Source: Prasinococcaceae sp. CCMP 1430 (lineage: Eukaryota > Plantae > Prasinodermophyta). Taken from it: a DNA stretch of 64,000 bases. The translations under genes and the position numbers were made by a program. The notes below the pieces were generated by a model. The model had not been told where the DNA came from. It was given only the letters and a program-made list of their open reading frames with translations, and did no database searches. The stretch spans positions 452,429 through 516,428 of the forward strand of contig RQSC01000032.1 of the NCBI GenBank assembly GCA_013416795.1, read 5' to 3'. Shown here in pieces: positions 14,723 to 41,102 of the stretch. Position 1 is the stretch's first letter. Each line of letters begins with the position of its first letter.

Positions 14723-17700
14723 CTACGCGGAGATGTGGGCAACGGGGTCGCCGTCCCTGTTGCGAAGCGGGTATGGGAGAGAGACTTTGACCCTGTCCAT
14801 GTCTGCTCCCCTCGCCGGCCTTCGTCGTCTCGCATCCATGACCGCCCGATCGTGCAGCGCCTTCTCGGTGGCCCGCTCCCTCTCGAGGACGGACCGCTCG
14901 TTCTTGAGGATGGCCCGCTCCTCTTCGGCAACGGCCCGCGCTTTCTCAGCGACGGACCGCTCGTTCTCAGCGACGGCCCGCTCGTTCGCGGCGACGGCCC
15001 GCTCGTTCTCGGCGATGGACCGCTCGTTCTCGGCGGCGGCCCGCTCCTTCTCGGCGGTGGCCCACTCCTTCTCGGTGGCCCGCTCCTTTTCGGCGACGGC
15101 CTGCTCCTTCTCAGCGAGGGCCTGCTCCTTCTCGGCGGCGGCCCGCTCCTTCTCGGCGGCGGCCCGCTCCTTCTTGGCGGCGGCCCGCTCCTTCTTGGCG
15201 GCCTGCTTCTTAATTATCTTCTCGGCGGCGCGCACAGCCTCGCTCTCGCGCACGGCATTGTTAGCACGCGCGCGTTCATGTTGCAGCTCGGCCTTCAGCT
15301 CATTGAGAAGCTCGTTTTCGTTGTACTCAGCCCACGAGCGCGCGGCCTCCAGCTCTGCCCTAAGCTCCGGCACGAGGTGGCTTTCGTCGCGGGCACGCTG
15401 GGCCTCCAGCTCGGCCCTCAGTTGCTCCACCACGTGGTCTTGGCTTTTGGCCGCGTTGCGCTGGCGCTCGGCTTCCAGCTCAGCCTCCAATGCCTGCAAG
15501 TCATTCTGGAGTTCCTTGACGGTGTCCATGTCCTGCTCGTGGACTTTCCTCGCATTGAGCTCACGCGCCTTAGCCTTGCGTTCGGCCGAGCGCGCCAACG
15601 CCAGAAGCGAATGCAGCGACTGGTCCACGTCCTCGCGCTCCTCATCTGAGGAGTAGGAATCGGAATGAACCTTGTCAGCCAGTGCCGTAGCAGCCGCTAG
15701 CTTCGCCTTGAGCTCGCGGTTGGCGTCAGACGCGCGCGCCCCCATCCGCACAAGCTTCTCCTGCGTCTGCCGAGCCAATTCCTGGCTCCTCTCGGCCTCC
15801 TTCTGTGCCTCGACGACCTGCTCAAAGAGCATGCGCATGCCCTCGCGCGTGCCATCAGACTCGGCGGAAAGATCGCCTCGCCTCGCCTCGGGCTCGTCGT
15901 TCGTGTCGGCCGCGCGTGCGCCTGCCCGCGACAGCCTCGCCTTCATCTCCTCGGCAAGCCTCTGGCTTCGCGCACGCTCAGCCTGCGCCCGCGCCGCCTC
16001 AGCAGCACGCGCGCGCATCGAGTTGCGCGCAGACTCGAGCTCGGAAGTCAACATCGTCTTCGCCTTGTCGGCGTCAGCGCGGATCGCGTCGCCGCGCTCT
16101 TTTGCCTGAGCGAGCTTCGTCGAGAGATCGTGGTTTGCCTCAGCCGAACGGAACGCCACGCGCGCGAGCCTCAGCTGCATCTCCTCGGCGATCTCTGCGT
16201 TGGTCTCGGCTTCAGCCTCCGCCTCCTTCGCCTGTACCGTCCACGCGTGCGCGTCGACTCGACAGGACTCGAGCTCGCTGGCCAGCTGCTGTTTCACCTC
16301 CTTTGCCTCGGCGAGGATCTGTGCCTTCTGCTCTTGAGCCTCTCTCAGCTTCTCCCTGAGGACACCGTTGTCGTCGGCCGCACGCGCGCCAACCCGGGAG
16401 AGTCTCGACTGCATCGTCTCAGCCAGGTTCTGGCAACTCTCGACGTCAGCCTGCGCCTGGACCACCTGCCCCGTAAGCTTGCTCATGCCCTGGCGAGCAG
16501 ACGCAAGCTCAGCTGCCATCCTTGACTGGGTGTGAGATGCCTGAGCGCGGGTGATCTCATGCTGCTCCCTTTCCTCGGCAAGCTTTGACGTCAGCTCTCG
16601 GTTGGACTCGGCCGCGCGCGCCGAGACGCTCGCGAGCCGAGATTTCATCTCCTCAGCCAGCCTCGTCGCGGCTTCCGCCTCGGCCTGCGCCTGCGCCGCC
16701 TCCGCCGTGCGCGTGCGCGCTTCATTGCGAGCGGCCTCGAGCTCCGCAGTCACGCTCGATTGGGCCTCCACGGCGTGCGCGAGGTCCGCGTGACCGCGCT
16801 CCCTGGCAGTCTCGAGCTGCGACGTCAGCTGGCGGCTGGACTCGGCCGCACGCCCCGACACGCGCGAAAGGCGAGACTTCATCTCCTCGGCCAGCCCCTT
16901 GGCGGCCTCGGCCTCGGCCTGGGCCTGCGTCGCCTGCGCCGTGCGCATGCGGACTTCGTTGCGCGCGGCCTCCAGCTCGGCGGCCATGCTCGACTTGGCC
17001 TCCGCGGCGTGCGTGAGGTCAACGTTGCCGCGCTCCCTGGCCGTCGCGAGCTCCGACGCGAGCTGGCGGTTGGACTCGGCCACGTGCAAGAGCCGCGACT
17101 TCCACTCCTCGGCCAGCTTCGTCGCGGCCTCCGCCTCCGCCTGCGCCTGCGCCGCCTCCGCCGTGCGCGCGCGCACGTCGTCGCGAGCGGCCTCGAGCTC
17201 CGCGGCCATGCTCGACTGGGCCTCGACGGCATTTGTGAGGTCCACGTGGCCGTTCTCCCTGGCCGTCGCGAGCTGCGATGTCAGCTGGCGGTTGGACTCG
17301 GCCGCGCGCGCCGACACGCGCGAAAGCCGGGACTTCATCTCCTCGGCCAGCTGCGTCGCCGCCGCCGCCTCGGCCTGCGCCTGCGCCGCCTCCGCCGTGC
17401 GCGTGCGCACGTCGTTGCGAGCGGCCTCGAGCTCCGCAGCCATGCTCGACTTGGCCTCCTCGGCCTCCGCACGCGCCTGTGCGCCCTCCTCCCTGGCTGT
17501 CGCCAGCTGCGAAGTCAGCTCTCGGTTGGACTCGGCCGCGCGCGCCGAGACGCTCGCGAGCCGAGATTTCATCTCCTCAGCCAGCCTCGTCGCGGCTTCC
17601 GCCTCGGCCTGCGCCTGCGCCGCCTCCGCCGTGCGCGTGCGCGCTTCATTGCGAGCGGCCTCGAGCTCCGCAGTCACGCTCGATTGGGCCTCCACGGCGT

Positions 17701-20700
17701 GCGCGAGGTCCGCGTGACCGCGCTCCCTGGCAGTCTCGAGCTGCGACGTCAGCTGGCGGCTGGACTCGGCCGCACGCCCCGACACGCGCGAAAGGCGAGA
17801 CTTCATCTCCTCGGCCAGCCCCTTGGCGGCCTCGGCCTCGGCCTGGGCCTGCGTCGCCTGCGCCGTGCGCATGCGGACTTCGTTGCGCGCGGCCTCCAGC
17901 TCGGCGGCCATGCTCGACTTGGCCTCCGCGGCGTGCGTGAGGTCAACGTTGCCGCGCTCCCTGGCCGTCGCGAGCTCCGACGCGAGCTGGCGGTTGGACT
18001 CGGCCACGTGCAAGAGCCGCGACTTCCACTCCTCGGCCAGCTTCGTCGCGGCCTCCGCCTCCGCCTGCGCCTGCGCCGCCTCCGCCGTGCGCGCGCGCAC
18101 GTCGTCGCGAGCGGCCTCGAGCTCCGCGGCCATGCTCGACTGGGCCTCGACGGCATTTGTGAGGTCCACGTGGCCGTTCTCCCTGGCCGTCGCGAGCTGC
18201 GATGTCAGCTGGCGGTTGGACTCGGCCGCGCGCGCCGACACGCGCGAAAGCCGGGACTTCATCTCCTCGGCCAGCTGCGTCGCCGCCGCCGCCTCGGCCT
18301 GCGCCTGCGCCGCCTCCGCCGTGCGCGTGCGCACGTCGTTGCGAGCGGCCTCGAGCTCCGCAGCCATGCTCGACTTGGCCTCCTCGGCCTCCGCACGCGC
18401 CTGTGCGCCCTGCTCCTGCGCCTCCGCCAGCTTCTGCGAAAAGTCGTGGCTCGCAGCCGCCGCGCGTTCCGCCACGCGCGTCAGCCTCGTCCGCATCTCG
18501 TCGGCGCGCTCCGCGTTCGATTCGGCTTCCGCCTGCGCCTGTGCCGCCTGCGCCGTGCGCGTGCGCACGTCGTTGCGAGCGGATTCAAGCTCGGCAGCCA
18601 TGCTCGACTTGGCCTCCTCGGCCTCGGCACGAGCCTGCTCGCCGCGCTCCTTGGCCGTCGCCAGCTGCGACGTGAGCTGGCGGTTGGACTCGGCCGCGCG
18701 CGCCGACACGCGCGCGAGTCTGGCCTTCATCTCATCAGCAAGCCGCGTGGCGTCCTCCGCCTCGGCCTGCGCCTTGGCTGCTTGCGCCGTGCGCGTGTGG
18801 ACTTCGTTGCGTGCGGCCTCGAGCTCGGCAGCCATGCTCGACTTGGCTGCTTCGGCGTGGGCGAGGTCCGTGTGGCCGTGCTCCCTGGCCGTGGCGAGCT
18901 GCGACGTGAGCTGGCGGTTTGATTCGGCAGCGCGAGCCGACACGCGCGCGAGTCTGGCCTTCATCTCATCGGCAAGCTTTGTGGCAGTCTCTGCCTCGGC
19001 CTGCGCCTGCACCGCCTGTGCCGTGCGCGTGCGCACATCGTTGCGGGCGGCCTCGAGCTCCGCAGCCATGCTCGACTGGACCTCCTCAGCGTGCGCAAGA
19101 TCCATGTCGCCGTGTTCCCTCGCCATCGCAAGCTGTGACGTGAGCTGGCGGTTCGATTCCGCCGCACGTGCCGACACGCGCAGGAGCCGAGATTTCATCT
19201 CATCGGCAAGCTTTGTGGCTGCCTCCGCCTCTGCCTGCGCGTGCACGGCCTGGGCCGTGCGCGTGCGAACGTCGTTGCGAGCGGATTCAAGCTCGGCAGC
19301 CATGCTCGACTTCGCCTCCACGGCCTTCGCGAGGTCCGTCACTGGCGCGAGGGACCGTCAGAGCTCGACGCTGCAGTCGACCGCCGACCTGAGCGCCGCA
19401 CGCCCCGACACGCGCGAAAGGCGAGACTTCATCTCCTCGGCCAGCCCCTTGGCGGCCTCGGCCTCGGCCTGGGCCTGCGTCGCCTGCGCCGTGCGCATGC
19501 GGACTTCGTTGCGCGCGGCCTCCAGCTCGGCGGCCATGCTCGACTTGGCCTCCGCGGCGTGCGTGAGGTCAACGTTGCCGCGCTCCCTGGCCGTCGCGAG
19601 CTCCGACGCGAGCTGGCGGTTGGACTCGGCCACGTGCAAGAGCCGCGACTTCCACTCCTCGGCCAGCTTCGTCGCGGCCTCCGCCTCCGCCTGCGCCTGC
19701 GCCGCCTCCGCCGTGCGCGCGCGCACGTCGTCGCGAGCGGCCTCGAGCTCCGCGGCCATGCTCGACTGGGCCTCGACGGCATTTGTGAGGTCCACGTGGC
19801 CGTTCTCCCTGGCCGTCGCGAGCTGCGATGTCAGCTGGCGGTTGGACTCGGCCGCGCGCGCCGACACGCGCGAAAGCCGGGACTTCATCTCCTCGGCCAG
19901 CTGCGTCGCCGCCGCCGCCTCGGCCTGCGCCTGCGCCGCCTCCGCCGTGCGCGTGCGCAGCAGCAACGCTCGCCGGAGCTCGAGGCGTCGGTACGAGCTG
20001 AACCGGAGGAGCCGCTCCGCACGCGCCTGTGCGCCCTCCTCCCTGGCTGTCGCCAGCTGCGAAGTCAGCTCTCGGTTGGACTCGGCCGCGCGCGCCGAGA
20101 CGCTCGCGAGCCGAGATTTCATCTCCTCAGCCAGCCTCGTCGCGGCTTCCGCCTCCGCCTCGGCCTGCGCCTGCGCCGCCTCCGCCGTGCGCGTGCGCAC
20201 GTCGTTGCGAGCGGCCTCGAGCTCCGCAGCCATGCTCGACTTGGCCTCCTCGGCACTTGTGAGGACCCTGTCGCCGTTCTCCCTGGCCGTCGCGAGCTGC
20301 GACGTCAGCTGGCGGTTGGACTCGGCCGCGCGCGCCGATACGCGCGCGAGCCGCGATTTCATGTCAGCAGCAAGCTCGGCGTTGCCGGCAGCCTCGGCCT
20401 GTGCCTGGACCGCCTGTGCCGTGCGCGAGCGCAAGTCGTTGCGCACGGACTCGAGCTCGGCAGCCATGCTCGACTGTGCCTCCTCGGCCTCAGTGCGCAT
20501 CTTTTCGCGCTCCTCCGTCGCTGCAGCAAGCTTCGATGTGAGGTTGCGGCTTGTCTCTGCCGCCCGCGCTGACACCCGCGTGAGCCTCGCCTTCATCTCC
20601 TCAGCCAGCGCCGCGTTGCTAGTCGCCTCGGCTTGCGCCTGCACCGCGAGCGACGAGTGCAAGCGCGCGTCGTTGCGCGCAGACTCGAGCTCGGCGCTCA

Positions 20701-22540
20701 TTCTCAGCTTCGACTCCTCCGCTTCCACGCGAATTCTGTCGCCCTCTGCCTTGGCCTCGGCGAGCTTCGACTCGAGGTTGCGACTCGTCTCGCTCGCTTG
20801 CGCCGCCACGCGCGTGAGCCTCGATTGCATCTCGTCCACAACCTGCTGGCTGTATTCGGCCTGCGCTTGCGCCTTCACAACCTCGCCCGAGAGCCGTTCC
20901 ATGCCTTGGCGCGCAGACTCGAGTTCGGCGGCCATGGCCGTCGAGCCGTGAGCAAGCCGGTCGCCGTGCGCACTTGCCTCCGCCAGCTCCGACTTGAGAC
21001 CGCTGATGTTGGTGCGAGCTTCTTCCGCGACCGTGCCCATGCGCGCCTCTGCCTGCTCGAGCCTCGCCCGCAAGTCGTCTGCGACTCTCTGGCTGTTGGA
21101 GGCCTCGTGCTGTGCCTGGGCCGCTTGCCCCGTGAGTTCGTGCATGGCCTGGCGCGCAGACTCGAGCTCGGCGGCCAGCCTCGCCTGTGCCTCTTCCGCC
21201 TCGGCACGGATCTCGTCGCCGCGCTCCCTCGCCTGCGCCAGCTGCGACGTGAGGTCGCCGCGCGCCTCGACCGCGCGCGCTCCCTCCTGCTCGAGTCGGT
21301 GCTCGAGCTGCTCAATGCGTCGCAGGCCGTGGTCGACCTCGGCCTGCGCCCGGGCAGCCTGATCCGTGAGCGTGCGCATGCTCTGGCGCGCAGACTCGCC
21401 CTCGCGGCGCGCCGCATCAAGATCGGTGGCCATCCTCGACTGCGCCTGCTCGGCGTCGGCGCGAATCTCGTCAAGCTCCCGCCGCACGCGGTCCCGCTCC
21501 GACTCCGCCGCCGCCGCTCGCCCCTCGGCCTGAGCGAGCGCGTCCTGCACGGCGTCGCGCTCGCGCTCCGCTGCGGCCGCTCGCTCTTTGGCGTGAGCCA
21601 GCGCATCCTGCACGACGTCGCGCTCGCGCTCCGTCGCCGCCGCTTGCCGCTCAGCCGCGGCGAGCGAGGCCTGCACTGAGTCCCGCTCGCCTTCCATCGC
21701 CGCCGCGTGCCGCTCAGCCTCCGCGAGCGATGCCTGCAGGCCGCCCACCGTCTCCTGGAGTTCTCGCCGCTCGACCTCCGCGCGCTGCAGGCGCGCCTGC
21801 TCCCCCTCGAGCTCGGCCTGCAAGGCGCCGTTTCGGAGGGCCTCGCGTTCGCTGACTTCGGTCGCACGTGCCCCTGCCTCCTCGAGCCTCGACCGCAGCT
21901 CCTCGACGACCTTGCGGCTGTTGTCAGCATCGGTCTGCGCCTTGAGAGCCTGCGCGTGCGCGGCGCTCGCCTCGGCCGCCCGCGCGCTCGCGTGCTCGAG
22001 CCTGATCTGCAGCTCCTGGACCACCCTCTGGCTGTTCTCCGCCTCCGCCTCCGCCTGCGTCGCCTTCGCCTGGAGCTTCGTCAAGTCGTTGCGCACAGCC
22101 GCACCCTCGCTGCGCGCGGCGCTCAGCTTGTCGGCCATCCTCGAGTTCGCGTCGCGAGTCTCGTAGAGCTCGCGCTGGATCTTGGAGAACGTCAACACGC
22201 TCAGGTTCGTCCACACCATGTTCACCCAGTAGCGAAACGCTCTCTTTCGGGTGGCGTCGAACCTGGACGCGAAGGGGTACATCACGAGCATCAGCGCGAA
22301 CAGCGGCGCGGACATCAAGAGCGTCCACACGTAGAAACAGATGCCGCGCCACAAGTTCACCATCCTGTCCCACGCCGCGCGGACTCCGGCGAACGGCCCG
22401 TCGCCTTGGTCCGTCGCCCCCGCGCGTTCGCCCCGCGGCTCGCCCGCAGCCGCCGGCGCCTCCTCCGTCACCGGCGGCACCTCGTACGGCGCCTGCCGCT
22501 CCTCGTCCGCCGTCCGCCTCGCCTCTCTCATGACCTCCAT
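14723..22540 (-). CDS. giant coiled-coil repeat protein A (~2,600 aa once repaired): LPAAT1-like membrane hairpin, ~23 x 78-aa repeats, AEKERAA heptad tail
   Basis: ORFs 19358-22921 and 14723-19342 are in the same frame. The only stop lies inside a complemented 55-nt block (19340-19394). ATG 22540 is the first visible start; the true start may lie in or beyond the N gap at 22619-22652. Confidence 0.8.
14865..15205 (-). repeat. 21-nt tandem repeat encoding AEKERAA-type heptads
   Basis: Repeated ggcggcccgctccttctc units; protein AAKKERAAAEKERAAAEKEQALAEKEQAV... Confidence 0.9.
16585..18410 (-). repeat. near-identical 924-bp tandem duplication (four repeat units); a third partial copy at 19395-19959
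   Basis: Identical shadow ORFs at 16879/17803 (offset 924) and 19429 (offset 1626 from 17803). 924 nt = 308 aa = 4 x 78 minus a 4-aa deletion. Block ends are approximate. Confidence 0.85.
19340..19394. other. 55-nt block complemented but not reversed (assembly artefact)
   Basis: The minus strand reads g ctc agg tcg gcg gtc gac tgc agc gtc gag ctc tga cgg tcc ctc gcg cca gtg. This is the base-by-base complement of the regular repeat c gag tcc agc cgc cag ctg acg tcg cag ctc gag act gcc agg gag cgc ggt cac. Confidence 0.95.
19960..20014. other. second 55-nt block complemented but not reversed (assembly artefact)
   Basis: The minus strand reads cggctcctccggttcagctcgtaccgacgcctcgagctccggcgagcgttgctgc. 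This is the complement of the regular gccgaggaggccaagtcgagcatggctgcggagctcgaggccgctcgcaacgacg. Confidence 0.95.
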
Positions 22541-22618
22541 CGGGGTTGCCAGCGCGGCCGCGCCCACCCCCCGCTGCGGCGACACGCCGCGTGAGCTCGG
22601 GCCGCGGGCGGGCAGGCT

Positions 22619-22652
22619 NNNNNNNNNNNNNNNNNNNNNNNNNNNNNNNNNN
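22619..22652. other. assembly gap (34 N)
   Basis: N run. Confidence 0.99.
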
Positions 22653-24522
22653 CCCCCACCCCCACCCCCACCCCCACCCGCTGCCGCCGCCGGCGCCCCG
22701 CTCGCTCGGCGTCGTCGGGCGAGACGAGATGTGTGGCGTCGGGCGCCCGGCCGCGCCGTCCGCGCCGCAGCAGGGTGCACCCGCGCGCGCGCCCGACGGC
22801 GCACGTTCGGGGTCTGACCCCAAAAAGCAAAAATTTCAAACCCAAACCCCGAAACCCTCGACCCCCAACCTCCGTGCTCCGGTTTGGCGCTCTCGCGCGT
22901 GCATTCCAACACCCCTCTCAAACCCTTTTCTCGGGAACGACCCCAAACGCGCGCGCGCGCGCGCGCGCGCGCGCGCGCCGCAGCGGAGCAGGTTCCGCGC
23001 GGATCCGCGCGAATTCCCCGCGGCGGCGGGAACCCGGCGAAAAAAACGCGAACGCGCGGAAGACGCGGAAAACGCGGAAACGCGGGAGCGAAACGCCCTC
23101 CCCCGAACGCGGCCCGTCAAAAGCCCATCGAAATCAAAGGCCGCGACGGAACGAAGCGCGCTGCGATGGCAATTCGGCCCGCCGAACGTCGGAACGAATC
23201 GGTATTGCGATGCGATTGCAATTCGATGCGATGCGATGCGATGTATGTAGTCTCCTGTGGCTACTTATAATGTAATGATGAATGGTAATATGGGAGGGAT
23301 CGAAGTGCGCGCGCGTCCTTCCTCACCTGCCTTCATTCCTTCCTTCCTTCCTTTTTCCTGCTTTTTTTTTTTTTTGGTCTCCCGACCGAACTCTGTTCCG
23401 TTCCCCCCTTTGGATTTTTCGATGTTGGGCGGACGTTTCTTGCCTCCTTTCATCAGAAAGACAGTTATAGACGAGGGTCGTTTTTGATTTGGGTGGGAAA
23501 TTGCTCCGCACACACACACATCACACACACTTGAGACTTTCGCTGGGGGCGGATTTTTTGGCTGCAACCCCAGGCAGGTCGTGTTGATTTTGATGGCGCC
23601 CTCACCTCCCCCCACCTCCCCCACCACCTCGCCTCGCCTTCGGCCTCGTGCGCCCCATCCTCCCACCCCCTCCTCCCGAACGGCCAGAGCGTCTGCTGCG
23701 CGCCCCCCTCCTCGCTCTGCGCCGCGCAGCGCGCGCTGCGCCCGCCGTTTTTTCCCGCCGCCGCCGCGCGAAAAAGCGCCCCGCGGACGTTGCGGGCGGG
23801 CCGCCGCCGTGCGGGCAGGCTGCGGCAGCGCACAGAGCGCGCGCCGGCCGCGCTTCGTTGCAGCCGCGACGATACCAATTCTCTTCGCGATGTGCACATG
23901 TGCGTGGGCAGGGACGGTACAGTACAGTGTGCATGGACGCTTCACGAGGCTTGTGAGACGCTTCTCGGCCACCACACCCGTTTTTCCTACGGAAACGATT
24001 CCGAGAAGCTCGACGCGGAGCGCGAGAATGCGAATGTATGAGCATTCGACCGGAATGCGTGCTAATTCGCGCGCGCGCGTTCGCGGGGGAACGCGCGCGC
24101 ACGCGCGCCTCATCCGGCTCCAAAAACCAACGATCCGATCCGCTGGTGTAACTGCCGCAGCCGAGGCGCGTCGCGACGGCGCGAGGGCGGGAGGGCGCGC
24201 GGGTGAGAGCGAGGGCCGAGGGGCGGCGTGAGGGCGCCGGGAGTGAGGGCTGTTACGTCTCCCCACCCACCCCACCCCTCCTGCCGTCGCCCTTGATGTG
24301 GTCGCTCCGCGCGCGCGGCGTCACACCGCGCGGTGCGTGCCTCGCAGGCGCCGTGACATCGTGCGGCGCCAACGGGCACCGCGGCGAGGGTGCCGCTGAG
24401 GCTCTCCCCCGCCACTGTCTGGCCGCAGGTTCCTGCGCGCGGTCCTTGCGGAGCGAGAGGCGGTCGAGTTCGAGAACTGTGGACGTTGCACGGAGGACCG
24501 CGAGATAAGGGAGGGGAGGCAG

Positions 24523-25320
24523 ATGGCGGACAGAGCGCTGCTCCTGGGGACCATGAGCAATGACAATTCGTACAGCATTTGCTCCACGTGGAACAACGAC
24601 GTACCGGCGTCCTTCCTGGAGCCGAACGGCGAGTGCAAGTACGGCCATGCGGCCGCTTGGGGGCAGAAGTGCCGGGAGGGCTACAACAATAAGGACGCGG
24701 CAAACACGTGCGAGTGCGTCAGCCAGGCGCGCGCGCGTAACGGCATGGAATCGAGGCTAAACAACTATCTCATCTTTGGTGCCGTTGCCTGTGGGCTCGC
24801 CATCCTCTGGATCGTATGGGCCTTTTACCGCAAGCGGAAGATGAAGTCCCAAGAGGCCTCGTCGGCGCCCGCGTACGGCGGCGTCTCGGTGCAGATGAGT
24901 TCCATGCTGCCGCCGGCCGGAGTGGTGCCCGTCGCGACCCCAGTCGCGGCGCCCAACTACGTGACGGCTGGGCAGCCCGCCGGCGCGGGGCAACCCGCGG
25001 GCGTGGCCGCGCCCATGCAGGCGGGCTACGCCGCGGCGGCCGTGCCTACGGCCATGCCCGGGCAGACCATCGCCCCCACGGTTCCGGGGGGTATTGCCAC
25101 CGCGCCACGCTACACCACGCCGCTGGCGCGTCTTCCCAAGGCGGAGGGCAACGCCTGCTGCGGCATGTCTCGTGGAGAATGCTGCGGCTTTTGGGTCACG
25201 CCGGGCTTTCTCCTCGTCATCGGGGGCTGTGCGCTCATCTATGGCGCGTCCAGAGAGAAGACCGACGAGTACTGGGCGGGGTGCGGAGAGGACACCGGGA
25301 TCACCAGCCTGTTTGGTTAG
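24523..25320 (+). CDS. hypothetical two-TM membrane protein: Cys-rich N-part, Pro/Ala-rich linker, Cys-Cys motifs before TM2
   Basis: TM1 YLIFGAVACGLAILWIVWAFY followed by RKRK; TM2 FWVTPGFLLVIGGCALIY. The frame is open upstream to an acceptor near 24428, so the start is probably further 5'. Confidence 0.7.
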   Translation: MADRALLLGTMSNDNSYSICSTWNNDVPASFLEPNGECKYGHAAAWGQKCREGYNNKDAANTCECVSQARARNGMESRLNNYLIFGAVACGLAILWIVWAFYRKRKMKSQEASSAPAYGGVSVQMSSMLPPAGVVPVATPVAAPNYVTAGQPAGAGQPAGVAAPMQAGYAAAAVPTAMPGQTIAPTVPGGIATAPRYTTPLARLPKAEGNACCGMSRGECCGFWVTPGFLLVIGGCALIYGASREKTDEYWAGCGEDTGITSLFG

Positions 25321-26053: not shown

Positions 26054-26479
26054 CTAGTACGGGTCGCGGACCGCCGACAGCCGCGCGAGCCTGTCCTGCA
26101 TCTCGTCCAAAAGCTGCTGGCTCCTCTCGTACTGGGCCTGCGCCCTGACCGCCGCCGCCTTGTGCCGCCACGCCTCGTCGCGCGCGGCCTGGAGCTGGGC
26201 GGCCAAGGTGAGCTCCGTCTCCTCCTTCTCGAGCTCGCGCTGCATGTGGTAGAACGTCAACGTGCTCATGTTCGCCCACACCAGGTTGGCCCAGATGTGG
26301 AACGCCTTCTTGCGCACCGCGTCGAACCTCGAAACGAAGGGGAACATCGCGGCCATGAGCGCGAACAGCGGGACGGACAGGACAATCGTCCACACGTAGA
26401 AGCAGACGCAGCGCCACACTGCCACCGCGCCGGAGAATGCCTTGTCAAAGATGTCCCTGTTGTCGTCGGGCATCGCCAT
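26054..26479 (-). CDS. short paralogue B: LPAAT1-like membrane hairpin plus one coiled-coil repeat unit (~141 aa)
   Basis: WRCVCFYVWTIVLSVPLFALMAAMFPFVSRFDAVRKKAFHIWANLVWANMSTLTFY, then QRELE..LAAQLQAARDEA..AVRAQAQYERSQQLLDEMQDRLARLSA. ATGs at 26479 and 26473; the frame is open to TTG 26644. Confidence 0.75.
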   Translation of the reverse strand: MAMPDDNRDIFDKAFSGAVAVWRCVCFYVWTIVLSVPLFALMAAMFPFVSRFDAVRKKAFHIWANLVWANMSTLTFYHMQRELEKEETELTLAAQLQAARDEAWRHKAAAVRAQAQYERSQQLLDEMQDRLARLSAVRDPY

Positions 26480-27399
26480 CGCCGCCCCCTCCGCGGCCGC
26501 GACCGCCACGTTCGCCGCGCGCCGCTGTACCGGGCCGCGGCCGACGCCGCGCGCTGCGGCCGGCACGGGCGGGAGGCGAGCGGCGCTCACGGCCGCCGGT
26601 GCGGCGGTCGCGGCGGCGGGGGTGGATGCGAGAGAGGCTCGCAAGTCGCCCTGCGCAACCCCTGCCGGGGCTCTTGAGGTTCAAGGCGCTGCGGGGCCTG
26701 CAGCGTGCGCTGCGCTGTTTCCGCCGAGCGGCCGCGCGCTCGTCGGGCGGGGCATGGAGCGCTTCGTGCGCGGCGACCTGGGCAGCGCGATGGCAGACTT
26801 CGACGCCGCGTACGAGATGGACGAGCAACTCAGGCCGCTTTTGTGGCAGCGCGGGCTGTCGCTTTACTACGCAGACAGGTTCGACGAGGCGCAGGTGCGT
26901 GATGCCCGCACACGCACGTTGCTCAACGCCATCGCACGCTCTCCGCCGGCTGCTCACACTGCGCGCTCACTCGCGCCATGCGCAGGCGCAGTTCCTGCTC
27001 GATACCTCGCGCAATCCGAACGACCTAGAAGAGCTCCTGTGGGCATTCGTATCGGACGCGCGCCGTCCTGGCAGCTCGGCGGCGGCAGCCCGTGGCCGAC
27101 TTCCCACGTTTCGCGGACGCGAGCGCCGCGCGCCGCTGCGTGCCGCGTGGGAGGCTGCGCGCACCGGCGCGCCGGAAGCGCTCGAGCAAGCGCTGGCAGG
27201 CGCGGAGGATGGCTCTGGCGCGCAGTTCTACTGCTTGCTATACACTGGCCTGCTTGCCGAGGCCGACGGCGACGCGGTGCGCGCGCGCGAGTATATCTCT
27301 CGTGCGGCGCGCTCGCCGTACGCAGCGCGCAGCGGGGACTACATGGGCGCACTCGCAATCAACCACGCGCAGCTACGCGGCTTCGATGCGGGCGCGTAG
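26451..27399 (+). CDS. conserved plastid-type TPR protein (NlpI-like)
   Basis: RGMERFVRGDLGSAMADFDAA..RPLLWQRGLSLYYADRFDEAQ|AQFLLD..NPNDLEE..GDYMGALA. Intron 26895-26985. The N-terminus is Ala/Arg-rich with RRAAL. Start ATG uncertain. Confidence 0.8.
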
Positions 27400-27481
27400 A
27401 CTACGAGTGCCGCCGCAGCAGTACACTGTACCGTATTGTGTCTCTACAAGCTCTTCCCTCCGAGACCGCGTGCATGCTGCG

Positions 27482-28189
27482 CTATCGCATGCAGTGACGT
27501 CTGTGCCCTGCGAGCGCCTGCGGGCTCTTGAAGTCGCGCCCACACTGCGTGCAGCAAGTGGCGGACACGGTGTTTCCGGTGCCGCCGCCGCCTGATGCGC
27601 CTTCGGTGCCACCGGCGCGGTAGTTACCAGCCCCTCCCGCTGGCTGCGCTCCCTTGCCTGCGCCGTACACGCCGCCGTTGGTGCCGGCCGACCCGGCGCC
27701 ATTGGCACTCGGCTTGACGGCTGTGTCCGCTGCAGTCTCACCAACGGCCGCGGCGGTGTCGCCCTCGCCATTCGCGGCGCTGGCAGCTGCGTCGCCCTTC
27801 GGCGCCAACGCATCGCCCGCGTCTGCATCGGCGCCTGCGCTGCCATTCGCTTTGGCGCCCGCCTGAGGCGCCCCTGTGTCCCTCTTCCTCTCCTCAGCCG
27901 CGGCGGCGGCGGCCTTCGCAGCCTCCTCGGCAGCCGCGGCCTCAGCGACCGAGCGCACAACGAGGATAGGCTTGATCTCGACCTCCTCGGCAAGCTCAAT
28001 CTTTCGCACGTGCTTCTCAAAACCGCCCCAGAGCGCCAGCGTCACGCGCCGCAACTCCGACCCCTCCGCCGCACAGTACGCGGCATCGCGCAGCACCGCA
28101 CGCACGTCTGCGACGAATGGCGCCGCCGACTTGTACTCGCCTTGCGACAGCCGCTGCTGCACCACGCTCAGGTCCAGCGCGTCGTTCAC
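27482..28189 (-). CDS. terminal exon of a protein with the C-terminal half of a bromodomain and a C2H2 zinc finger
   Basis: LDLSVVQQRLSQGEYKSAAPFVADVRAVLRDAAY..GS..FE (bromodomain helices A-C) and CTQCGRDFKSPQALAGHRRHC. Acceptor at 28190; upstream exon not identified. Confidence 0.7.
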   Translation of the reverse strand: MNDALDLSVVQQRLSQGEYKSAAPFVADVRAVLRDAAYCAAEGSELRRVTLALWGGFEKHVRKIELAEEVEIKPILVVRSVAEAAAAEEAAKAAAAAAEERKRDTGAPQAGAKANGSAGADADAGDALAPKGDAAASAANGEGDTAAAVGETAADTAVKPSANGAGSAGTNGGVYGAGKGAQPAGGAGNYRAGGTEGASGGGGTGNTVSATCCTQCGRDFKSPQALAGHRRHCMR

Positions 28190-29252
28190 CTGCGTGGGGG
28201 CGCGGGCGCTGCCGTCAGCACTGCTCCACCCGCCCTCTCCTTGTTGCAAGCGCTGGCACCCGCTCGCGATCTTTTTTTTTTTTAGGCGAAATCCCGCCCC
28301 GGCGAAGCTTCAACCGTCAAGGAGCGCCGCGCGCGCGCGCGCGGGCACTGCTCCTCCCTCTCCTCCCGCCCCGCCCCAAGGGATGAAGGCAAGACATCAG
28401 GGCCTCTCCTCTCGCCTCTGTCTCCCTGGCGTGGCGTTTCTGCCTCCCCCCCGCCCCCCGCCGCCGCGCCCCCTCGCGCGCACTGTGGCGGCGCGCGCGA
28501 CACCGCAGCCCGCAAAGACGACCGCCGCGCACCAACGATCCCCAATCGAAATAACATTATGTTGAATCAATACAACTCATTTAGACTTCACAAACGACGT
28601 TACATTCGTATGAAATCTAAAATATTCCGAAAGCCGCAAGCTCCTCACGGGCGAGCAGACTTGGATAAGTCTCAAGCACGTCGCGTGTCGGATTCGGCGT
28701 CGCCGCATGCGTTTTGACCTGCCGCGGCCCAACGTCACACTTTTTGGAATGACTTCCATTTGAATACAACCTCCGTGTTTTTATCGCCCTTATTAGACAT
28801 CTCCGTGAGTTCGTCAGAATACGACGGATTCAATTTGGAGGGCGGCACGGCGGCGGGGGAGCGCGCGGCCCGCGACGGAGCCGCGCCGCGCGGGGGATTC
28901 GCATGCATTGACTTCTTCGATGTTTTTTTTGAACGGGCCCACGTCACAAAGCACGTCGAGACGGGCATATTTTAACCCTCCTTCTACCCCAAATATGCAC
29001 AGCGTGCCGCGTTCGTACCCATACCTTGAAGCGTTCTTGTTCGGGACAGCAGTTGAGGCGGAGGCCCCCCGGGAGAGACGCGTCAGCCCGCGGTGGCGTC
29101 GGCGCGCCGAGGCTGCAAGCGAGCAGGTGGAACCAAGGCGACGGGCGGCGCAGGCGCCCGCTGCCAGCGGCGCCGGCGTCGCCGCCGCGGCCGCCCAATC
29201 GCTGTCACATATACTGTTTGATTGTTACATACAAGTGTGCACGTACGTGCTC

Positions 29253-32200
29253 CTACGCCGAGACGCCGAGCACGCCGCTGCCGCCCCGAGCAACGTCGGC
29301 GTCGACGAGCGATTCCTCGGCGGCGCGCTCTGCCAGCGCCGCCGCCTTCTCGGCGCGCGCGCCAACGGATTCCAGCTCGTCGCTGAGTTCCTGCACGAGG
29401 TCCTTGTCCGAGAGCCACCGCTGGATGAAATTCGAGCAGAACTTGAACGCGTCCTTCTCGCGCGACCGCTTCACGTGCGCCTCGCGCGCCACGGCCTGTC
29501 GTTCGGCCGCATGCGCCTCCGCAAGCTGCGACTGCAGCGAGGCCGCCACCTCCTCCACGTCGTCGTACTCGTCCTGCAGCGCGTCGTGAGCATGCATCAA
29601 GTCGGCGTGCGCCTGCATGGCAGCGCTCACCGCCGCCGGCGTGACACCCCCGCCCTCGCGAAGGACATCCGTCCGGTCGCACAGGGCGCCAAATGCGCGC
29701 TCCAGGTCTCCGAGGCGCGCGCGCAGCCTGTAGGCCTCCGACTCGCTCGCCGCGAGCTGGCCCCTCGCGTCCGACAGCTGCGAGGACAGGGCGTGGCTCT
29801 GTTCGGCCGCGTGCGCTCGCACCCGCGCCAGCTTTGACTCGAGCAAATCGGCGTGATTCTGGTTCTGCTGGACCGCGGCCTCCGTCCGCGCCAGCTGGGC
29901 CGTGCGCGCGCGCACGTCGTCGTGCGCCGACTCAAGCTCGGAGGCCATTCTCGACTGTGCCGCCGCGGCGTCGGCGCGGATCTTGTCACCCTGCTGCCTC
30001 GCCTCCGCCAACTTGAGCGTGAGGTCACGGTTCGCCTCGATCGACCGCGCGAGTCTCACCTCCAGGTCCTCGACACGTTGCTGATAGTCCTTGGCCTCAG
30101 CCTGCGCCTGCTCCGCCTGTGCTACGCGCGTGCGCTGGAACATGCGTGCAAACTCAAGTTCGGCGGCCATGTGCGCCTGCACCTCCTCGGCTTCCGCGCG
30201 GATCATGTCACCCTGCGCGTGTGCGTCTGCCAGCTGGGAGGCGAAGTCGTGGCTGGCCTCGGCCGCGCGCTCCGACACGCGAGCGAGCCTCTCCTGCATC
30301 TCCTCCGCATGCCTGCTGCTCTTGTCGGCCTCGTCCTGCGCGCGCGCCGCCTGCGCCGTGCGCATGCGCACGTCCTCGCGGGCAGACTTGAGCTCGGCCT
30401 CCAGTCGCGCCTGCGTCTCCTCGGCTTGAGCGCGAATCCTGTCGCCCTGCTCGCTCGCTTCCGAGAGCTTCGCCCCGAGCTCGTGGCTCGCCTCAGCCGC
30501 GCGCGCGGCCACGCGCGCGAGCCTCGCTTTCATCTCTTCCGCGAGCTCAGCGTTGGCGTCGGCCTCGGCCTGCGCCTGCGCTGCCTTTGCAGTGCTCGTA
30601 TGCGCGTCGTTGCGCGCAGACTCGAGCTCGGCCGCCATTCGCGACTGTGCCTCCTCCGAGTAAGCGCGAATGGCGTCACGCTCCCCTCTTGCCTCCGCGA
30701 GCTTCAGGCCGAAGTCACGGCTCGACTCGGTGGCACGCGCCGCCACGCGCGCGAGTCTCGTCTGCATTTCCTCAGCGAGTTGCGAGTTGGCCTCTGCCTC
30801 CGCCTTTGCCTGCGCCAGCTCCGACGTGCGCGCGCGCACGTCGTTGCGCGCGGATTCCAGCTCCGCGGTCATGCGGGCGTGGGTCTCCTCGGCCCAAGCG
30901 CGCATCCTGTCACTGTGCTCCTGCGCGTCCGCCACCTGGGATGCGAAGTCGTGGCTGGCCTCGGCCGCACGCGCCGCCACGCGGGCGAGCCTTCCCTTCA
31001 TCTCCTCAGCGAGCTGAGCGTTGGCGTCGGCCTGCGCCTGCGCCTGCGCGGCCTGGGCTGTGCGGGCGAGAGCGTCGTTGCGCGCGATCTCGAGCTTGGC
31101 AGCCATGTCCAACTGCGCTTGCTCAGCGCCGGCGCGAAGCATGACGCCGTCCTCCCTCGCCTCCGCGAGCTGCGACGTGAGGTCGCGGCTTGTCTCGGCC
31201 CCGCGCGCTGCAACGCGCGACAGCCTCGCCTTCATCTCCTCAGCAAGTTCGGCGCTCGAGTCGGCGTCAGCTTGCGCTTGCGCTGCCTGTGCCGTGCGCG
31301 CGCTCACGTCGTTGCGTGCTGACTCGAGCTCGGCGGCCATGCTCGAATGCGCGCGCTCCGCGTCGGCGCGAATCTTGTCGTTCTCCTCCTTTGCGGCGGC
31401 CAGCTTCGAGGCCAGATCACGGTTGGCGTCCGCTGCACGCGCTGCCATTCGCGCGAGCCTGACCTGCATCTCCTCAGCAAGCTGGTGACTCTTGTCAGCC
31501 TCGGCCTGCGCCCGCGCCGCCTGCGCCGTGCGCGCGTGCGCGTCCTGGCGGGCTGACTCGAGCTCGGCTTCCATTCGCAAGTGTGCCTCCTTTGCCTCAG
31601 CCCGAATCCTGTCGCCCTCGACCGTGGTATCAGCGAGCGTCGATATCATGTCGCTCCTCGTCTCGGCCGCGCGATACGACAACCGCGCAAGCTCCAGCTG
31701 CGATTCCGCATCGGGGTCATTCCGAGACACAACTTCGATGGCCAACCTCGACTGCACCTCCTCAGCGTTGGAGCGAGCCTTGTCGCTCCGCGCCTCTGCC
31801 TCTGCCAATTTCGAGGACAGCTCGCGGTTTGCCTCGGCCGCACGTGCTGCCACCCGCGTGAGCCTCGACTGCATCTCCTCGGCGAGCTTGCTGCTCTTGT
31901 CGGCCTCGGCCTGCGCGTGTGCAGCCTGGGCTGTGCGCGCGAGCACATCGTTGCGCGCAGACTCGAGCTCTGTAGTCATCCTCGACTGCGCTTCCGCGGC
32001 CTCGGCTCGAATGGCATCGCCCTGCTCCTTCGCAGCAGCAAGCTTCGCCGTGAAACCACGGTTGGCCTCGGCCGCGCGCTCAGCCACGCGCGCGAGCCTC
32101 GACTGCATCTCCTCCGCAAGTCGGTTGCTCTCGTCCGCCTCCGCCTGCGCCTGCGATGCCTCTGCCGAGCGCACGCGCAAGGCATTTCGCGCGGACTCAA

Positions 32201-35200
32201 GCTCTGCGGACATTCGCGACTGCCTTTCCTCCGCCTCGGCGCGTATCCTTTCACCTCGCTCCTCCGCTGCTGCGAGCTTCGAGGTGAGGTCACTGTTCGT
32301 CTCGGCCGCACGTCCGGCCACCCTCGCAAGCCTTGACTTCATCTCCTCAGCGAGCTCCGCGTTGGCACTGGCCTCGGCCTGCGCCTGCGCCGCCTGGGCC
32401 GTGCGCATGAGCACATCGTTGCGTGCAGACTCGAGCTCAGCGGCCATTCGCGACTGCTCTTCTTCCGCCTCGGCACGTATCCTTTCACCTCGCTCCTCCG
32501 CCGCGGCGAGCTTCGACGTGAGGGCACTGCTCGTCTCGGCCGCGCGCTCTGCCACGCGCGCGAGCCTTGTCTGCATCTCCTCAGCAAGCTCTGCGTTGGC
32601 GTCGGCCTCACCCTTCGCATTTGCCATCTGTGAAGTCCGCGAGCGCACGTCGTTGCGTGCAGACTCGAGCTCAGCGGCCATTCTCGACTGCTCTTCGGCG
32701 GCCTCGGCACGGATCTTGTCGACCTCTTTCTGCGCCGTGGCGAGCTTCGACGTGAGGACACGGCTCGTCTCGGCTGCACGATGGGACACTCGCGTCAGCC
32801 TCGAAATCATAGCTTGAGCGAGCTCCGCGTTGGTGTCGGCGTCGGCCTGTGCCTGTACCGCCTGTACTGTGCGTGCGCGCGCGTCTTGGTGCGAGGACTG
32901 AAGTTCGGCGGCCATTCTCGACTGCGTCTCCTCGGCCTCGGCGCGAATCTTGTCACCTTGCTTCTGCGCGTCTGAAAGCGCAGCCGTCAGATTGCGACTG
33001 GTGTGAGCCGCACGATCGGAAACCCTCGAGAGCCTCGACTGCATCTCTTCAGCAAGTGTCGCGTTCGAGGCGGCCTCAGCCTTCGCCTGCACCGCTTCTG
33101 CCGTGCGCGCGCGCACATCGTTGCGCGCCGACTCCAGTTCGGCGGTCAAATGCGCCTGCGCCACCTCTGCATCCGCGCGAATCCGATCGCCCTCCTGCCT
33201 GGCGTCCGCCAGCTTGGAGGTGAGGTCACTGCTTGTCGCAGCCGCACGTGCACCCACGCGCGACAGCCTCCCTTTCATCTCCTCGGCAAGCTCCAGCATG
33301 GAGTCGGCCTCGCGCTGCGCCTGAAGTGCCTCCGCAGTGCGCGAACGCACGTCGTTGCGCGCAGACTCGAGCTCCGCAGCCATGCTCGACTGCGCGTTTT
33401 CGGAGTCGGCACGGATCTTGTCACGCTCCTCCTTTGCATCTGCTAGCTTGACGTTTGCCTCGGCAGCACGTGTTGCCATCCGCCCGAGCCTTGTCCGCAT
33501 CTCCTCGGCGAGTTTCTGACTCCTGTCGGCCTCAGCCTGCGCACGCACTGCCTGCGCCGTGCGCTTACGCATCTCGTTGCGCGCAGACTCGAGCTCGGCT
33601 TCCATGCGCGATTGCGCCTGCTCCGCCTCGGCGCGAATCTGGTCGCCCTCAGTCCTCGCGTCCGAGAGTGCCACCATGAGGTCGTGGTTGGCCTCGGCAG
33701 CACGTGCTGCCACCCGCGTGAGCCTCGACTGCATCTCGTCCGCCAGCTTGTGGCTCTTGTCAGCCTCGGCCTGCGCCTGCGCTGCCTGTGCCGTCCGCGC
33801 GCGCACGTTTCTGCGTGCGGTCTCCAGCTCGGCCGTCAAACGCGCCTGCGCCACCTCTGCATTCGTGCGAATCCGATCGCCCTCCTGCCTGGCGTCCGCC
33901 AGCTTGGAGGTGAGGTCACTGCTTGTCGCAGCCGCACGTGCCCCCATGCGCGACAGCCTCGACTGCATCTCCTCGACAAGCGCCGAGTTGGAGTCGGCTT
34001 CGGCCTGCGCATGTGCTGCCTGTACTGCACGCGCGCGCACGTCATTGCGAGCCGACTCGAGCTCAGTGGACATTCTCGACCGCACTTCCTCCGCCTCTGC
34101 CCGAATCCTGTCGCCCTCTTCCCTTGCGTCCGCAAGCTTCGACGTGAGGTCGCTCGTCGTCTCGGCTGCACGCGCGCCGAAGCGCGTGAGCCTCGACTGC
34201 ATCTCCTCGGCAAGCTCCAAGTTGGCGATGGCCTCGCGCTCGGCCTGCAAGGCCTGCGCCGCGCGCGCGCGCACGTCCATGCTTGCGGACTCAAGCTCTG
34301 CGGACATTTTTGACTGCACCTCGTCCGCTTCTGCCCGAATCCTGTCCCCCTCCTGCCTTGCGTCCGCAAGCTTCGACGTGAGGTCGCTTGTCGTCTCGGC
34401 TGCACGCGCCCCAACTCGCGTGAGCCTCGACTGCATCTCCTCGGCAAGCTCTGCATTGGCGCTAGCCTCGGCCTCCGCCTGCACCGCCCGGGTCGTGCGT
34501 GCGCGCACGTCGTTTTGTGCGGACTCGAGCTCTGCGGCCAACCTCAACTGTGCGTCCTTTGAGTCAGCACGCATCTTGTCTCGCTCCTCGATTCCTCTTG
34601 CCAGCTGCGTGGTCAAGTCAGTATTTGTCTTGGCCGCACGTGCTGCAACACGCGCGAGCCTCGACCGCATCTCCTTCGCGACTTTGTGACTCTTGTCCGC
34701 CTCAGCCTGTGCTCGCACTGCCTGCGCCGAAGACATGCGCACGTCGTTGCGCGCAGACTCGAGCTCGGCTTCCATGCGTGATTGCGCCTGCTCCGCCTCG
34801 GCGCGAATCTGGTCGCCCTCAGTCCTCGCGTCCGAGAGTGCCACCATGAGGTCGTGGTTGGCCTCGGCAGCACGTGCTGCCACCCGCGTGAGCCTCGACT
34901 GCATCTCCTCGGCGAGCTCGTGGCTCTTATCGGCCTCGGCCTGCGCCTGCTCTGCCTCTGCCGTACGCGCACGCGCGTTGTTGCGCGCGGCCTCCAGCTC
35001 GGCCGTCAAACGCGCCTCCACCTCCTCTGCATCCACACGAATCCTGGCGCCCTCCTCCCTCGCTCTCGCCAGCTGGGAGGTGAGGTCCCTACGTGTCTCC
35101 GCGGCACGCGCCTCCACCCGCGCCAGCTTTGACCTCGTCTCCTCAGCGTTGCGATCGGCCTCGGCTACCGCCTGCGACGCCTGCGCCGTTCGCGTGCGCA

Positions 35201-36715
35201 GGTCGTCGCGCGCGGACTCGAGCTCGGCAGCTATCTTTGCCCGCGCCTCGTCCGCCTCAGAGCGAATCATGTCGCCCTTCTCCGCGGGCGTCAACCAGGA
35301 CTCGAGGTCGCCCGTCGTCTCGGCCACACCAAGCTCGGCCTTCGTTTGCGACTTCTTGAGCGACAGATTGATCACGTGCCGGCGCGAGGACTCGCTCTCG
35401 CCGGGGCGTGGAGGCACGTCGGGCAAGGTTGGCTTCCTGATGCCGCCAATCTCTTTGATGGGCGCGGTGGCCAGCACGCTCCCTTCGGCCGCCTTGGCCT
35501 TGGCGCCGGCGATGGCCTTCTTCATCTGCTCGCGCGTAAAATTGGACGCTACCTCGATGGGGTTGCCACCGATGAAAAGCCGCGCGATGATGGAGCCCTC
35601 TTCGAAGTTGACGTCAATGTCGGAGTCTTCCACGCCCATGATGTCGGCATACGCGGTCTTGAGCTGCGCGCGCAGCTCGGCCTCAGCCTTGGGGTCGTTG
35701 GCGATGGCATCGAAGTCAGCGTCGAGCGACACGAACGTCGTGAGCTGCTGCCCCGTTCGGCTGTCCCTGGCCTCGGCCGCGGGCGCCGGTGGCGACGAGA
35801 AGGGAGCGCCTCGCGGCGGCTGCATCGCAGGGCCCACCCGTGGCCCACCGCCGCGTGGCCCGCCGCCGCCCGGAGCGGACTGCCGGGCGTCGGCAACCCG
35901 CTGCACTCGAGTGTGGTAGGAACGCTCGCTGCTGCTCACGAAGGACGAGCTCTCGTACCAGTCGCGCTGCGGCCGCGTCCACTTGCCGCGTTCGGGGGAG
36001 GGTGGCCGTTGGCGGAGGCTCTTTTGCAGCTCCTCGCGGTTCGCGCGAGCCTCGCGCCGGAGCCTCTCCGCGCCCGCCTCCCAGCGGTTCGCGGGAGCAT
36101 CCGCGCCCCCCTCACGGCTGTCGCCTCCCGCCAGCGGCTCGCGGCTCGCCGCGCCGCCAGCGGCGGAGGTGCTGGCGGCGCCTGCGCCCCCCGCCTGCGA
36201 GGAAAAGCGAAGGGAGGACACCCCCGCGGCGACCAGCGAGCCCACGACGAGCGCCGCGCCCGCGGGCCCCGCGCCGACTCCAGGGACGGTGGAAACCACC
36301 TCGGACAGGCGCCCCAGCGCTGCGGCAGCCGGAGCCAGCGTCGCGGCAGCCGGCGCTGCGGGCTCCGCAGGCGTGGCAGTTCGCGCTGCTGCTACGGGCA
36401 GAGCGCCAGGGGCTGCGGGTACCGTGGCCGGCGCGAGCGACGCGGCACCCGGCGCCGCCCGCAGCCGCGAGGCGGCCTCAGAGGCCGCCTGAGCCTGCAA
36501 CCCCTGGTCGCGCTCCTGCGCCTGCTCCGGCTCCGCCTTCTGCCGGCGCTGCCTCGCCCACGCTCCCGGCAGGCCGACGTTCTCGGCGGGGGCGCCAGCT
36601 TCGGGCTCGGCCACCCAGCTCCCGCCGGGACCCCACTCGGTCTGCACCAGCGTGACCGTGGGCAGCTCGACCCCGCGCGCCGCTCGCGCCGCCGCGCGCC
36701 GCCGCCTCGGCGTCG

Positions 36716-36716
<1 letters not shown>
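29253..36716 (-). CDS. giant coiled-coil repeat protein C (~2,490 aa): Ala/Pro-rich N-part, hydrophobic segment, SEA-like module, ~23 x 78-aa repeats
   Basis: Uninterrupted ORF with the same repeat consensus as protein A (AELESARNDVR.RTAQA.QAQAEA..N..LAEEMQSRL.RV.ARAAE). No ATG is seen before the (CA)n tract. Confidence 0.8.
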
Positions 36717-36775
<59 letters not shown>

Positions 36776-36809
36776 GCACGCACACACACACGTGCTACAC
36801 ACACGTGCT

Positions 36810-36840
<31 letters not shown>

Positions 36841-36911
36841 CACACACACGTGCTACACACACGTGCTACACACACACACACACACACGCACGCACACACA
36901 CTTAACACACA
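36717..36911 (+). repeat. compound (CA)n microsatellite with cacgtgcta interruptions
   Basis: Seen directly. Confidence 0.97.
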
Positions 36912-41100: not shown

Positions 41101-41102
41101 CG

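Follow-up and report, generated by a model that had tools for sequence, protein, structure and literature searches.

Three genes sharing a 78-residue unit

The window analyzed here, a 64,000-nt (64-kb) stretch of the alga Prasinococcaceae sp. CCMP 1430 (GenBank assembly GCA_013416795.1, contig RQSC01000032.1, positions 452,429–516,428), carries three minus-strand genes, which we call A, M and B, that share a repeat unit of 78 amino acids (234 nt). Tandem Repeats Finder (TRF) located 234-nt arrays at 16587–20488, 30093–31619 and 31825–35000. A hidden Markov model (HMM) made from the window's own 78-residue units and scanned across the 64 kb matched A, M and B, with best single-unit E-values of 1e-35, and gave no match elsewhere in the window. 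Gene A contains ~27 matches, 25 of them good (15638–21406) and two weak ones further upstream (21755–22111); gene B contains 24–25 (29709–35393); and gene M has a single match to unit positions 1–43, i.e., half a unit. A first-pass annotation of this DNA had described the repeat, its length and its strand, all of which are borne out by TRF and the unit HMM, and had counted ~23, 1 and ~23 copies. The count for B is close to the ~24 units found here, but A holds ~25–27 units and M only half of one, and the number for A is unreliable. The observation as a whole is partly confirmed.

Mean identity between units is 55–62%, and five columns are gene-specific. The best match of every B unit is another B unit, and the arrays therefore expanded or were homogenized inside their own genes. 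The arrays of A and B show no colinearity by position, and the similar unit numbers were thus not inherited position by position.

DNA 97–99% identical to the window is present in Tara Oceans metagenome scaffolds and in one Logan assembly. The contigs used for comparison were L001 (Logan), L002 (a Tara Oceans scaffold) and L004 (ERZ28548065, sample chicken_3). The last of these carries near-identical algal DNA at 1.3x coverage in a metagenome labelled chicken, presumably as contamination or as material derived from feed or water.

The coding part of gene A inside the window comprises 2631 codons (14723–22618), ending with the stop at 14723–14725. The first ATG in the window is at 22538–22540, and the true start lies inside or beyond an assembly gap at 22619–22652. 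Following the frame from its N-terminal end, a transmembrane module (22157–22411), recognized by Kyte-Doolittle hydropathy and by identity to M, has its hydrophobic core at 22265–22345 (Kyte-Doolittle mean 1.99 over 19 residues), followed by a basic amphipathic segment. The N-terminal part of the rod contains a TRF-detected 63-nt tandem array of 3.9 copies (21484–21729; 21 aa, three heptads), after which comes the main array of ~25 units, three of them 74 aa long (15638–21406). Near the C-terminus, TRF detects a 21-nt array of 16 copies (14870–15200; 7 aa, AEKERAA type). Both side arrays are in frame with the gene, and both of their periods are multiples of a heptad.

Gene M (26054–26644, 196 aa), delineated by the unit HMM, homology to A and codon statistics, consists of a presequence-like N-terminus, a transmembrane module assigned by homology to A (26225–26455) and half a repeat unit (26072–26200), which is followed by the stop. 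The unit HMM found no further unit-like exon downstream. A and M share an N-terminal module with 46% identity over 138 aa (E = 3e-39), within which the transmembrane modules are 60% identical, and M is a short paralogue of the 5′ end of A. In both proteins a hydrophobic core of 24–27 residues is followed by a basic, Trp-rich flank that is more basic than the flank before the core. Ahead of the hydrophobic segment lie ~120 residues in M and ~190 in A, the first 60–70 of which are basic and include one Asp or Glu each. The N-terminus of A, as read in L002, aligns with that of M (P0001, from L001) and shares with it the motif GPSLP-x-RG. These N-termini look like organellar presequences.

The anchor module may resemble the N-terminus of plastid lysophosphatidic acid acyltransferase (LPAAT), a lead that gained no support in two weak tests (PF01553 and PlsC). 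The acyltransferase domain of the LPLAT/AGPAT family (PlsC, LPAT1) was not found: neither M nor the N-terminal part of A gives a PF01553 match at E-values up to 1, and where such a domain with HX4D would be expected after the anchor, the coiled coil starts directly after the module. A BLASTP comparison of the module with E. coli PlsC as the one family member used gave no alignment. Searches of NCBIfam and PDB with the module returned nothing above sub-threshold coiled-coil and transmembrane noise.

The 5′ region of M differs between assemblies. The window holds a 1.9-kb segment (26561–28447) with an ORF (open reading frame; 27482–28249, minus strand) encoding a bromodomain and a C2H2 zinc finger, where L001 and L004 instead carry ~350 nt, 92% identical between the two contigs, that give M an A-like presequence. 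The discrepancy points to a structural variant or else to mis-joined sequence in the window.

Gene B (29253–35825, ~2190 aa), delineated by its open frame, the unit HMM and codon statistics, is taken from its first ATG (35823–35825) to the stop. Its ~24 units are preceded by an N-terminal region of 190 aa without repeats and followed by a helical C-terminal region of 215 aa. Its HMM-defined array (29709–35393) comprises 23 full or near-full units, one truncated unit (31569–31700) and one partial unit. The longest exact internal repeat in the array is 128 nt, so that the array is credibly assembled, and L001 and L004, which are independent contigs, both recover it. Exactly one 234-nt unit (~32304–32537) is missing from L004, which is either copy-number variation or a collapse at 1.3x coverage; L004 also has several 1–5-nt indels that fragment the ORF. 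The N-terminal region of B has no family match in Pfam or NCBIfam, and a single-sequence AlphaFold2 (AF2) model of the first 199 residues was unusable (predicted local distance difference test score, pLDDT, 46).

The frame of B is open upstream of the first ATG (35826–36791) into a CA microsatellite. In the open frame 36791–29253 no Met occurs before codon 323, i.e., in the first 322 codons, and the CA run holds the frame open over 25 meaningless codons. GC content at codon position 2 is 0.71 in this segment versus 0.46–0.56 in genes, and it is probably a non-coding 5′ untranslated region or promoter. Neither in nor upstream of B did we find the transmembrane module of A and M, and B itself has no transmembrane segment. 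An N-terminal hydrophobic segment, initially attributed to each of the three paralogues, is confirmed in A and M by their common module, but the weak G/A-rich hydrophobic segment credited to B sits upstream of the first ATG, in sequence that looks non-coding.

Assembly of gene A and coding evidence

As assembled, gene A is listed as two ORFs, 14723–19342 and 19358–22921, divided by a stop at 19358–19360 that is the only one in the minus-strand frame from 22921 to 14723. The stop lies in a 55-nt block (19340–19394), and a second block of the same length (19960–20014) garbles one unit. When aligned to sister units, every base in both blocks is the complement of the sister-unit base at the same position, unreversed, over exactly 55 nt. 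A 30-mer scan of the 64 kb revealed no further blocks of complement without reversal. We know of no biological process that yields a complement without reversal; inversion yields the reverse complement. Both blocks look like artefacts of patching or gap closing during assembly. Complementing them in silico removes the stop, regains two canonical units and gives an ORF of 2631 codons, and A is one gene, not two.

The 565 nt between the blocks (19395–19959) are 100% identical to 17769–18333 and to 16845–17409, and 16590–17487 equals 17514–18411 exactly; about half of the array of A is made of 100%-identical copies. The only independent cover of the central array, L002, has Ns across all of it. 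The identical copies and the Ns in L002 together make the unit number of A unreliable.

Comparison with L002 also bears on the 34-N gap at 22619–22652, which cuts the presequence of A. L002 is 99.2% identical to the window from the gap edge at 22618, where the frame of A matches an ORF in L002, and its positions 1–161 are 161 nt without counterpart on the far side of the gap. The real gap is therefore at least ~160 nt, of which the 34 Ns are an underestimate, with the start of A hidden in it. An in-frame ATG at position 27 of L002 adds 45 codons and gives an Ala/Arg/Gly-rich N-terminus of 71 aa with one acidic residue. The open frame at 22653–22921, which passes through a CCCCCA repeat, is not part of gene A. 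Microsatellites lie directly upstream of both large genes: CA (36717–36913) upstream of B, and CG (22948–22978) and CCCCCA (22653–22679) upstream of A. The two complement blocks and the undersized gap would make annotation split or truncate gene A, and the artefacts at 19340–19394, 19960–20014 and 22619–22652 matter to annotators of this sequence.

GC content by codon position in A, B and M is ~0.73/0.51/0.80–0.93 (0.72–0.74/0.51/0.80–0.88 in A and B together; 0.74/0.51/0.85–0.88 in A; 0.93 at position 3 in M). The pyruvate kinase and PDI-like genes nearby have similar values, whereas antisense ORFs have an atypical GC content at codon position 1 or 2. Against L001, we counted seven synonymous and no non-synonymous substitutions in the 3′ end of B (1374 nt), and four and one, respectively, in M. 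Against L002, there are two synonymous and one non-synonymous substitutions in the 3′ part of A, and five and ten in its 5′ part. Pooled over L001 and L002, 18 synonymous changes in 1480 sites and 12 non-synonymous changes in 4646 sites correspond to an omega of ~0.21. For B against the low-coverage contig L004 the counts are 14.5 synonymous and 12.5 non-synonymous, and omega is 0.27. As judged by codon usage and substitution pattern, A, M and B appear to be real protein-coding genes.

The unit, its relatives and its surroundings

Large hydrophobic residues are found in at least 70% of the units at ten columns (3, 10, 30, 34, 38, 41, 52, 56, 66 and 77), and eleven further columns are at least 85% Ala. 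With a spacing of 3–4 residues, 22 core positions close over the 78 residues as 10 heptads and two four-residue stutters, i.e., 3.545 residues per turn; the Fourier peak of the unit is at 3.54 residues. The core positions are 82% hydrophobic or Ala versus 25% elsewhere, a shift in register collapses the signal, and the best closed path of 3-/4-residue steps scores 0.823 versus 0.69 ± 0.04 for shuffled columns. The core stripe, about half of which is Ala, closes without break over unit borders, and acidic and basic clusters alternate regularly along the unit. An AF2 model of four units, made with a 14-row in-register alignment, shows two helices of 135 and 171 residues arranged as a hairpin (pLDDT 63). 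The helices run across unit borders with no break at each unit; being a monomer model, it is silent on the oligomeric state.

The all-helix model agrees with the initial description of the repeats as strongly helical and, together with the continuous a/d-type core stripe, supports the view that they build long helical rods. At the rise of 0.1485 nm per residue customary for helices in coiled coils, the ~2000 helical residues of B would extend over ~0.3 μm, and A over at least that length.

When 1.84 billion representative proteins were searched with a 29-unit profile, five hits were obtained. Three of these (P0002, P0004 and P0005) are fragments of A or B from Tara and other assemblies, and one (P0006) is a spurious fish zinc-finger protein. 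The remaining hit, P0003, represents a separate protein whose cluster has ten members in Tara contigs, and it is the sole relative found beyond A, B and M. Its ORF (L003:13–3507, plus strand, 1164 aa) lies on a Tara scaffold with a GC content of 0.70 and encodes a SAP domain (24.7 bits; cut-off 23.9), about six repeats of 22–23 aa and four or five 78-residue units. Scans of JGI metagenomes with the anchor module and with four B units, and of prokaryotic genomes and IMG/VR with four units, found no relatives. A word-indexed protein search with M returned only its own ortholog P0001, and one with the repeat region of B returned nothing, the candidates being swamped by low-complexity words.

Searches of Pfam, NCBIfam and PDB with the units, the anchor module and the terminal regions gave only sub-threshold coiled-coil and transmembrane noise. 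SMC (20 bits versus a cut-off of 729), CALCOCO1 (19.7 versus 36) and KASH_CCD (23 versus 43) were rejected as generic coiled-coil noise. The spectrin repeat (PF00435), a three-helix bundle of ~106 residues, was likewise rejected, with 14.8 bits versus 29.9 and with the AF2 helices of 135 and 171 residues crossing unit borders. SF-assemblin membership was not supported either: the unit has 78 residues with 22 core positions, not 29 residues, and no Pfam match reaches threshold.

The first-pass annotation did not recognize the repeat as a named family, and this judgement held in all three databases and in the 1.84-billion-protein search, where no well-characterized family was matched and three of the five hits were the locus's own fragments. 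Its description of the locus as an undescribed system was overstated; the family we find is lineage-specific, but structurally its kind is common. From these searches the family appears real, unnamed and very narrow, with the 78-residue unit joined to different heads, and seems confined to a single lineage of marine green algae with GC-rich genomes. A single outside relative among 1.84 billion proteins suggests a clean lineage-specific invention.

The window has a GC content of 68% and three N gaps; apart from the one in gene A, these are at 53485–53708 (224 N) and 62637 (1 N). It carries an ordinary eukaryotic nuclear gene set, mostly intron-poor: a REV3-type DNA polymerase zeta (1289–7729), a PDI-like thioredoxin protein (39647–41221) and a RecQ helicase (47243–49183), all on the minus strand, a pyruvate kinase on the plus strand (49864–51420), and FkbM methyltransferase and alpha/beta hydrolase genes. 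Since the polymerase, PDI-like, RecQ and pyruvate kinase genes are each a single long ORF, the genome is intron-poor here. The closest named relatives of the pyruvate kinase are from the green algae Tetraselmis (57%) and Nephroselmis (53%). Between M and A, a plus-strand ORF (24523–25320) encodes 265 residues, is Cys-rich toward the N-terminus and contains a single clear transmembrane segment; it has no Pfam match.

Possible tethering, location and function

We propose, with a probability of roughly one half, that A and M are membrane-tethered and B unanchored Ala-rich coiled-coil rods that act as scaffold, spacer or tether, most likely at an organellar (chloroplast) membrane. Tandem 78-residue units would form an uninterrupted, probably dimeric, α-helical rod. 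In A and M, a presequence would be followed by a transmembrane segment and a basic flank; since the flank after the core is the more basic one, the positive-inside rule would orient the rod toward the stroma, matrix or cytosol. Gene A would provide the membrane-tethered scaffold, spacer or tether, in M the same kind of anchor would carry just a short stub of coiled coil, and B would be an unanchored rod that may co-assemble with them via the common unit. The idea that all three paralogues are membrane-tethered rods thus finds support for A and M, in their presequence and transmembrane module, but not for B, and the interpretation originally offered for the locus is partly supported.

Several observations weigh against our proposal. 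B is without an anchor, and the L003 relative has a SAP DNA-binding domain in place of one, which indicates that membrane tethering is not a property of the whole family. In a genome of 68% GC, base composition by itself would lead one to expect the Ala/Arg/Gly-rich N-termini of A and M, which are therefore weak evidence for the plastid-envelope location first suggested. Since only ~40% of the core positions carry large hydrophobic residues, the rod could associate weakly or be a single helix; confidence in the AF2 model is low (pLDDT 63) and, being a monomer, it cannot show the oligomeric state. Finally, the array of A is partly an assembly reconstruction, and the case for expression of A, M and B consists of codon statistics and purifying selection.

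The alternative that survives best, a serious one although less likely than our proposal, is that the module of A and M is a signal anchor of the endoplasmic reticulum (ER) or nuclear envelope, in the manner of kinectin, CLIMP-63 and p180, with the rods facing the cytosol or nucleoplasm, or that the rods assemble into striated fibres through their charge pattern, as does SF-assemblin. The presequence-like composition may be mere GC bias, and the SAP domain of the L003 relative points to chromatin or the nuclear matrix. SAP domains, however, occur also in plastid nucleoid proteins, and the ~120 (M) or ~190 (A) residues before the anchor, with a near acid-free start conserved between A and M, fit an organellar presequence better than a cytosolic head. 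A fibre would be in keeping with the regular alternation of acidic and basic clusters and with the precedent of SF-assemblin, an algal segmented coiled coil of heptads with a skip residue (PMC2119799), but there is no similarity to SF-assemblin or to any other Pfam family.

It is rather improbable that the units instead fold back into discrete helical bundles in the manner of spectrin or apolipoproteins, in which case the chain would be shorter and either elastic or lipid-binding. A turn could be provided by the semi-conserved Gly-Asp at unit positions 63–64, the Ala-rich, weakly hydrophobic core fits antiparallel packing, and the four-unit AF2 monomer is an antiparallel hairpin, broken at a Gly-Asp site. 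The break affects only one of the four such sites, however, and a hairpin is the usual answer of AF2 for a monomeric coiled coil. In addition, the core stripe runs on through the unit borders, and the sub-threshold Pfam Spectrin match falls in the C-terminal region of B, outside the units.

A further, very unlikely reading takes the unit as a lineage-specific heteromerization module joining the anchor (A and M), the head of B and the SAP domain (L003), so that the 0.3-μm rods would tether DNA, as chromatin or in the plastid nucleoid, to a membrane and keep the distance between them constant; the anchor might have been co-opted from a plastid lipid acyltransferase. Scarcely credible is the view that the arrays are non-functional, i.e., a 234-bp satellite kept open by GC richness, decaying pseudogenes or assembly artefacts: GC-rich repeats do yield long ORFs on both strands, and A bears a stop, two garbled units and large 100%-identical copies where the metagenome scaffold has Ns, but the stop and garbled units look like complement artefacts from which canonical units return when read back, the B array is free of long exact repeats, open over 2190 codons and found in both L001 and L004, synonymous changes are in excess (7 versus 0 in the 3′ end of B), the hydrophobic register is kept across units of only 55–62% identity, and the non-repeat N- and C-terminal regions share the frame of the array.

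Among known proteins, the closest analogue of A and M by architecture is MFP1 of plant thylakoids, a scaffold that positions other proteins. It combines a transit peptide, a Tat signal and a short transmembrane domain with a long coiled coil in the stroma (PMC10801857). A and M combine an N-terminal targeting-like sequence and a short hydrophobic anchor with a coiled coil, long in A. MFP1 differs in being several times shorter and without the 78-residue tandem unit, and A and M have no Tat-type twin-arginine motif directly before the anchor. No homology was detected, as the profile search of 1.84 billion proteins returned no plant protein and Pfam and PDB were empty. By repeat logic, the closest analogues are SF-assemblin and beta-giardin of algal flagellar roots, structural rods with heptads and a periodic register shift. 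In SF-assemblin, a 29-residue repeat of four heptads plus a skip residue builds a rod of 253 residues (PMC2119799). Here, by contrast, the unit has 78 residues (10 heptads and two stutters), is present in at least 24 copies in the large genes, and is joined to an anchor in A and M.

Further likenesses are to ER proteins in which a long coiled coil is joined to an N-terminal anchor (kinectin, CLIMP-63, p180) and to the C-terminally anchored golgins. All of these combine a single anchor with a rod of hundreds of nm that serves as tether or spacer, but they are not homologous to A, M and B and are without long, near-regular tandem units. Tropomyosin and the myosin rod share the Ala-rich coiled-coil core, periodic charge zones and skip or stutter residues; homology and any actin-related context are lacking, and the proteins described here are far larger. 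By analogy with MFP1 or kinectin, A, M and B would represent a new family of a known kind, that of long coiled-coil structural rods.

The family is useful for studying the growth of tandem coiled-coil arrays. If A and M do carry organelle-anchored rods of ~0.3 μm in a picoplanktonic alga, these would rank with the largest structural elements in the cell, and A and M would be candidate organizers of chloroplast or envelope architecture in a lineage that has been little studied.

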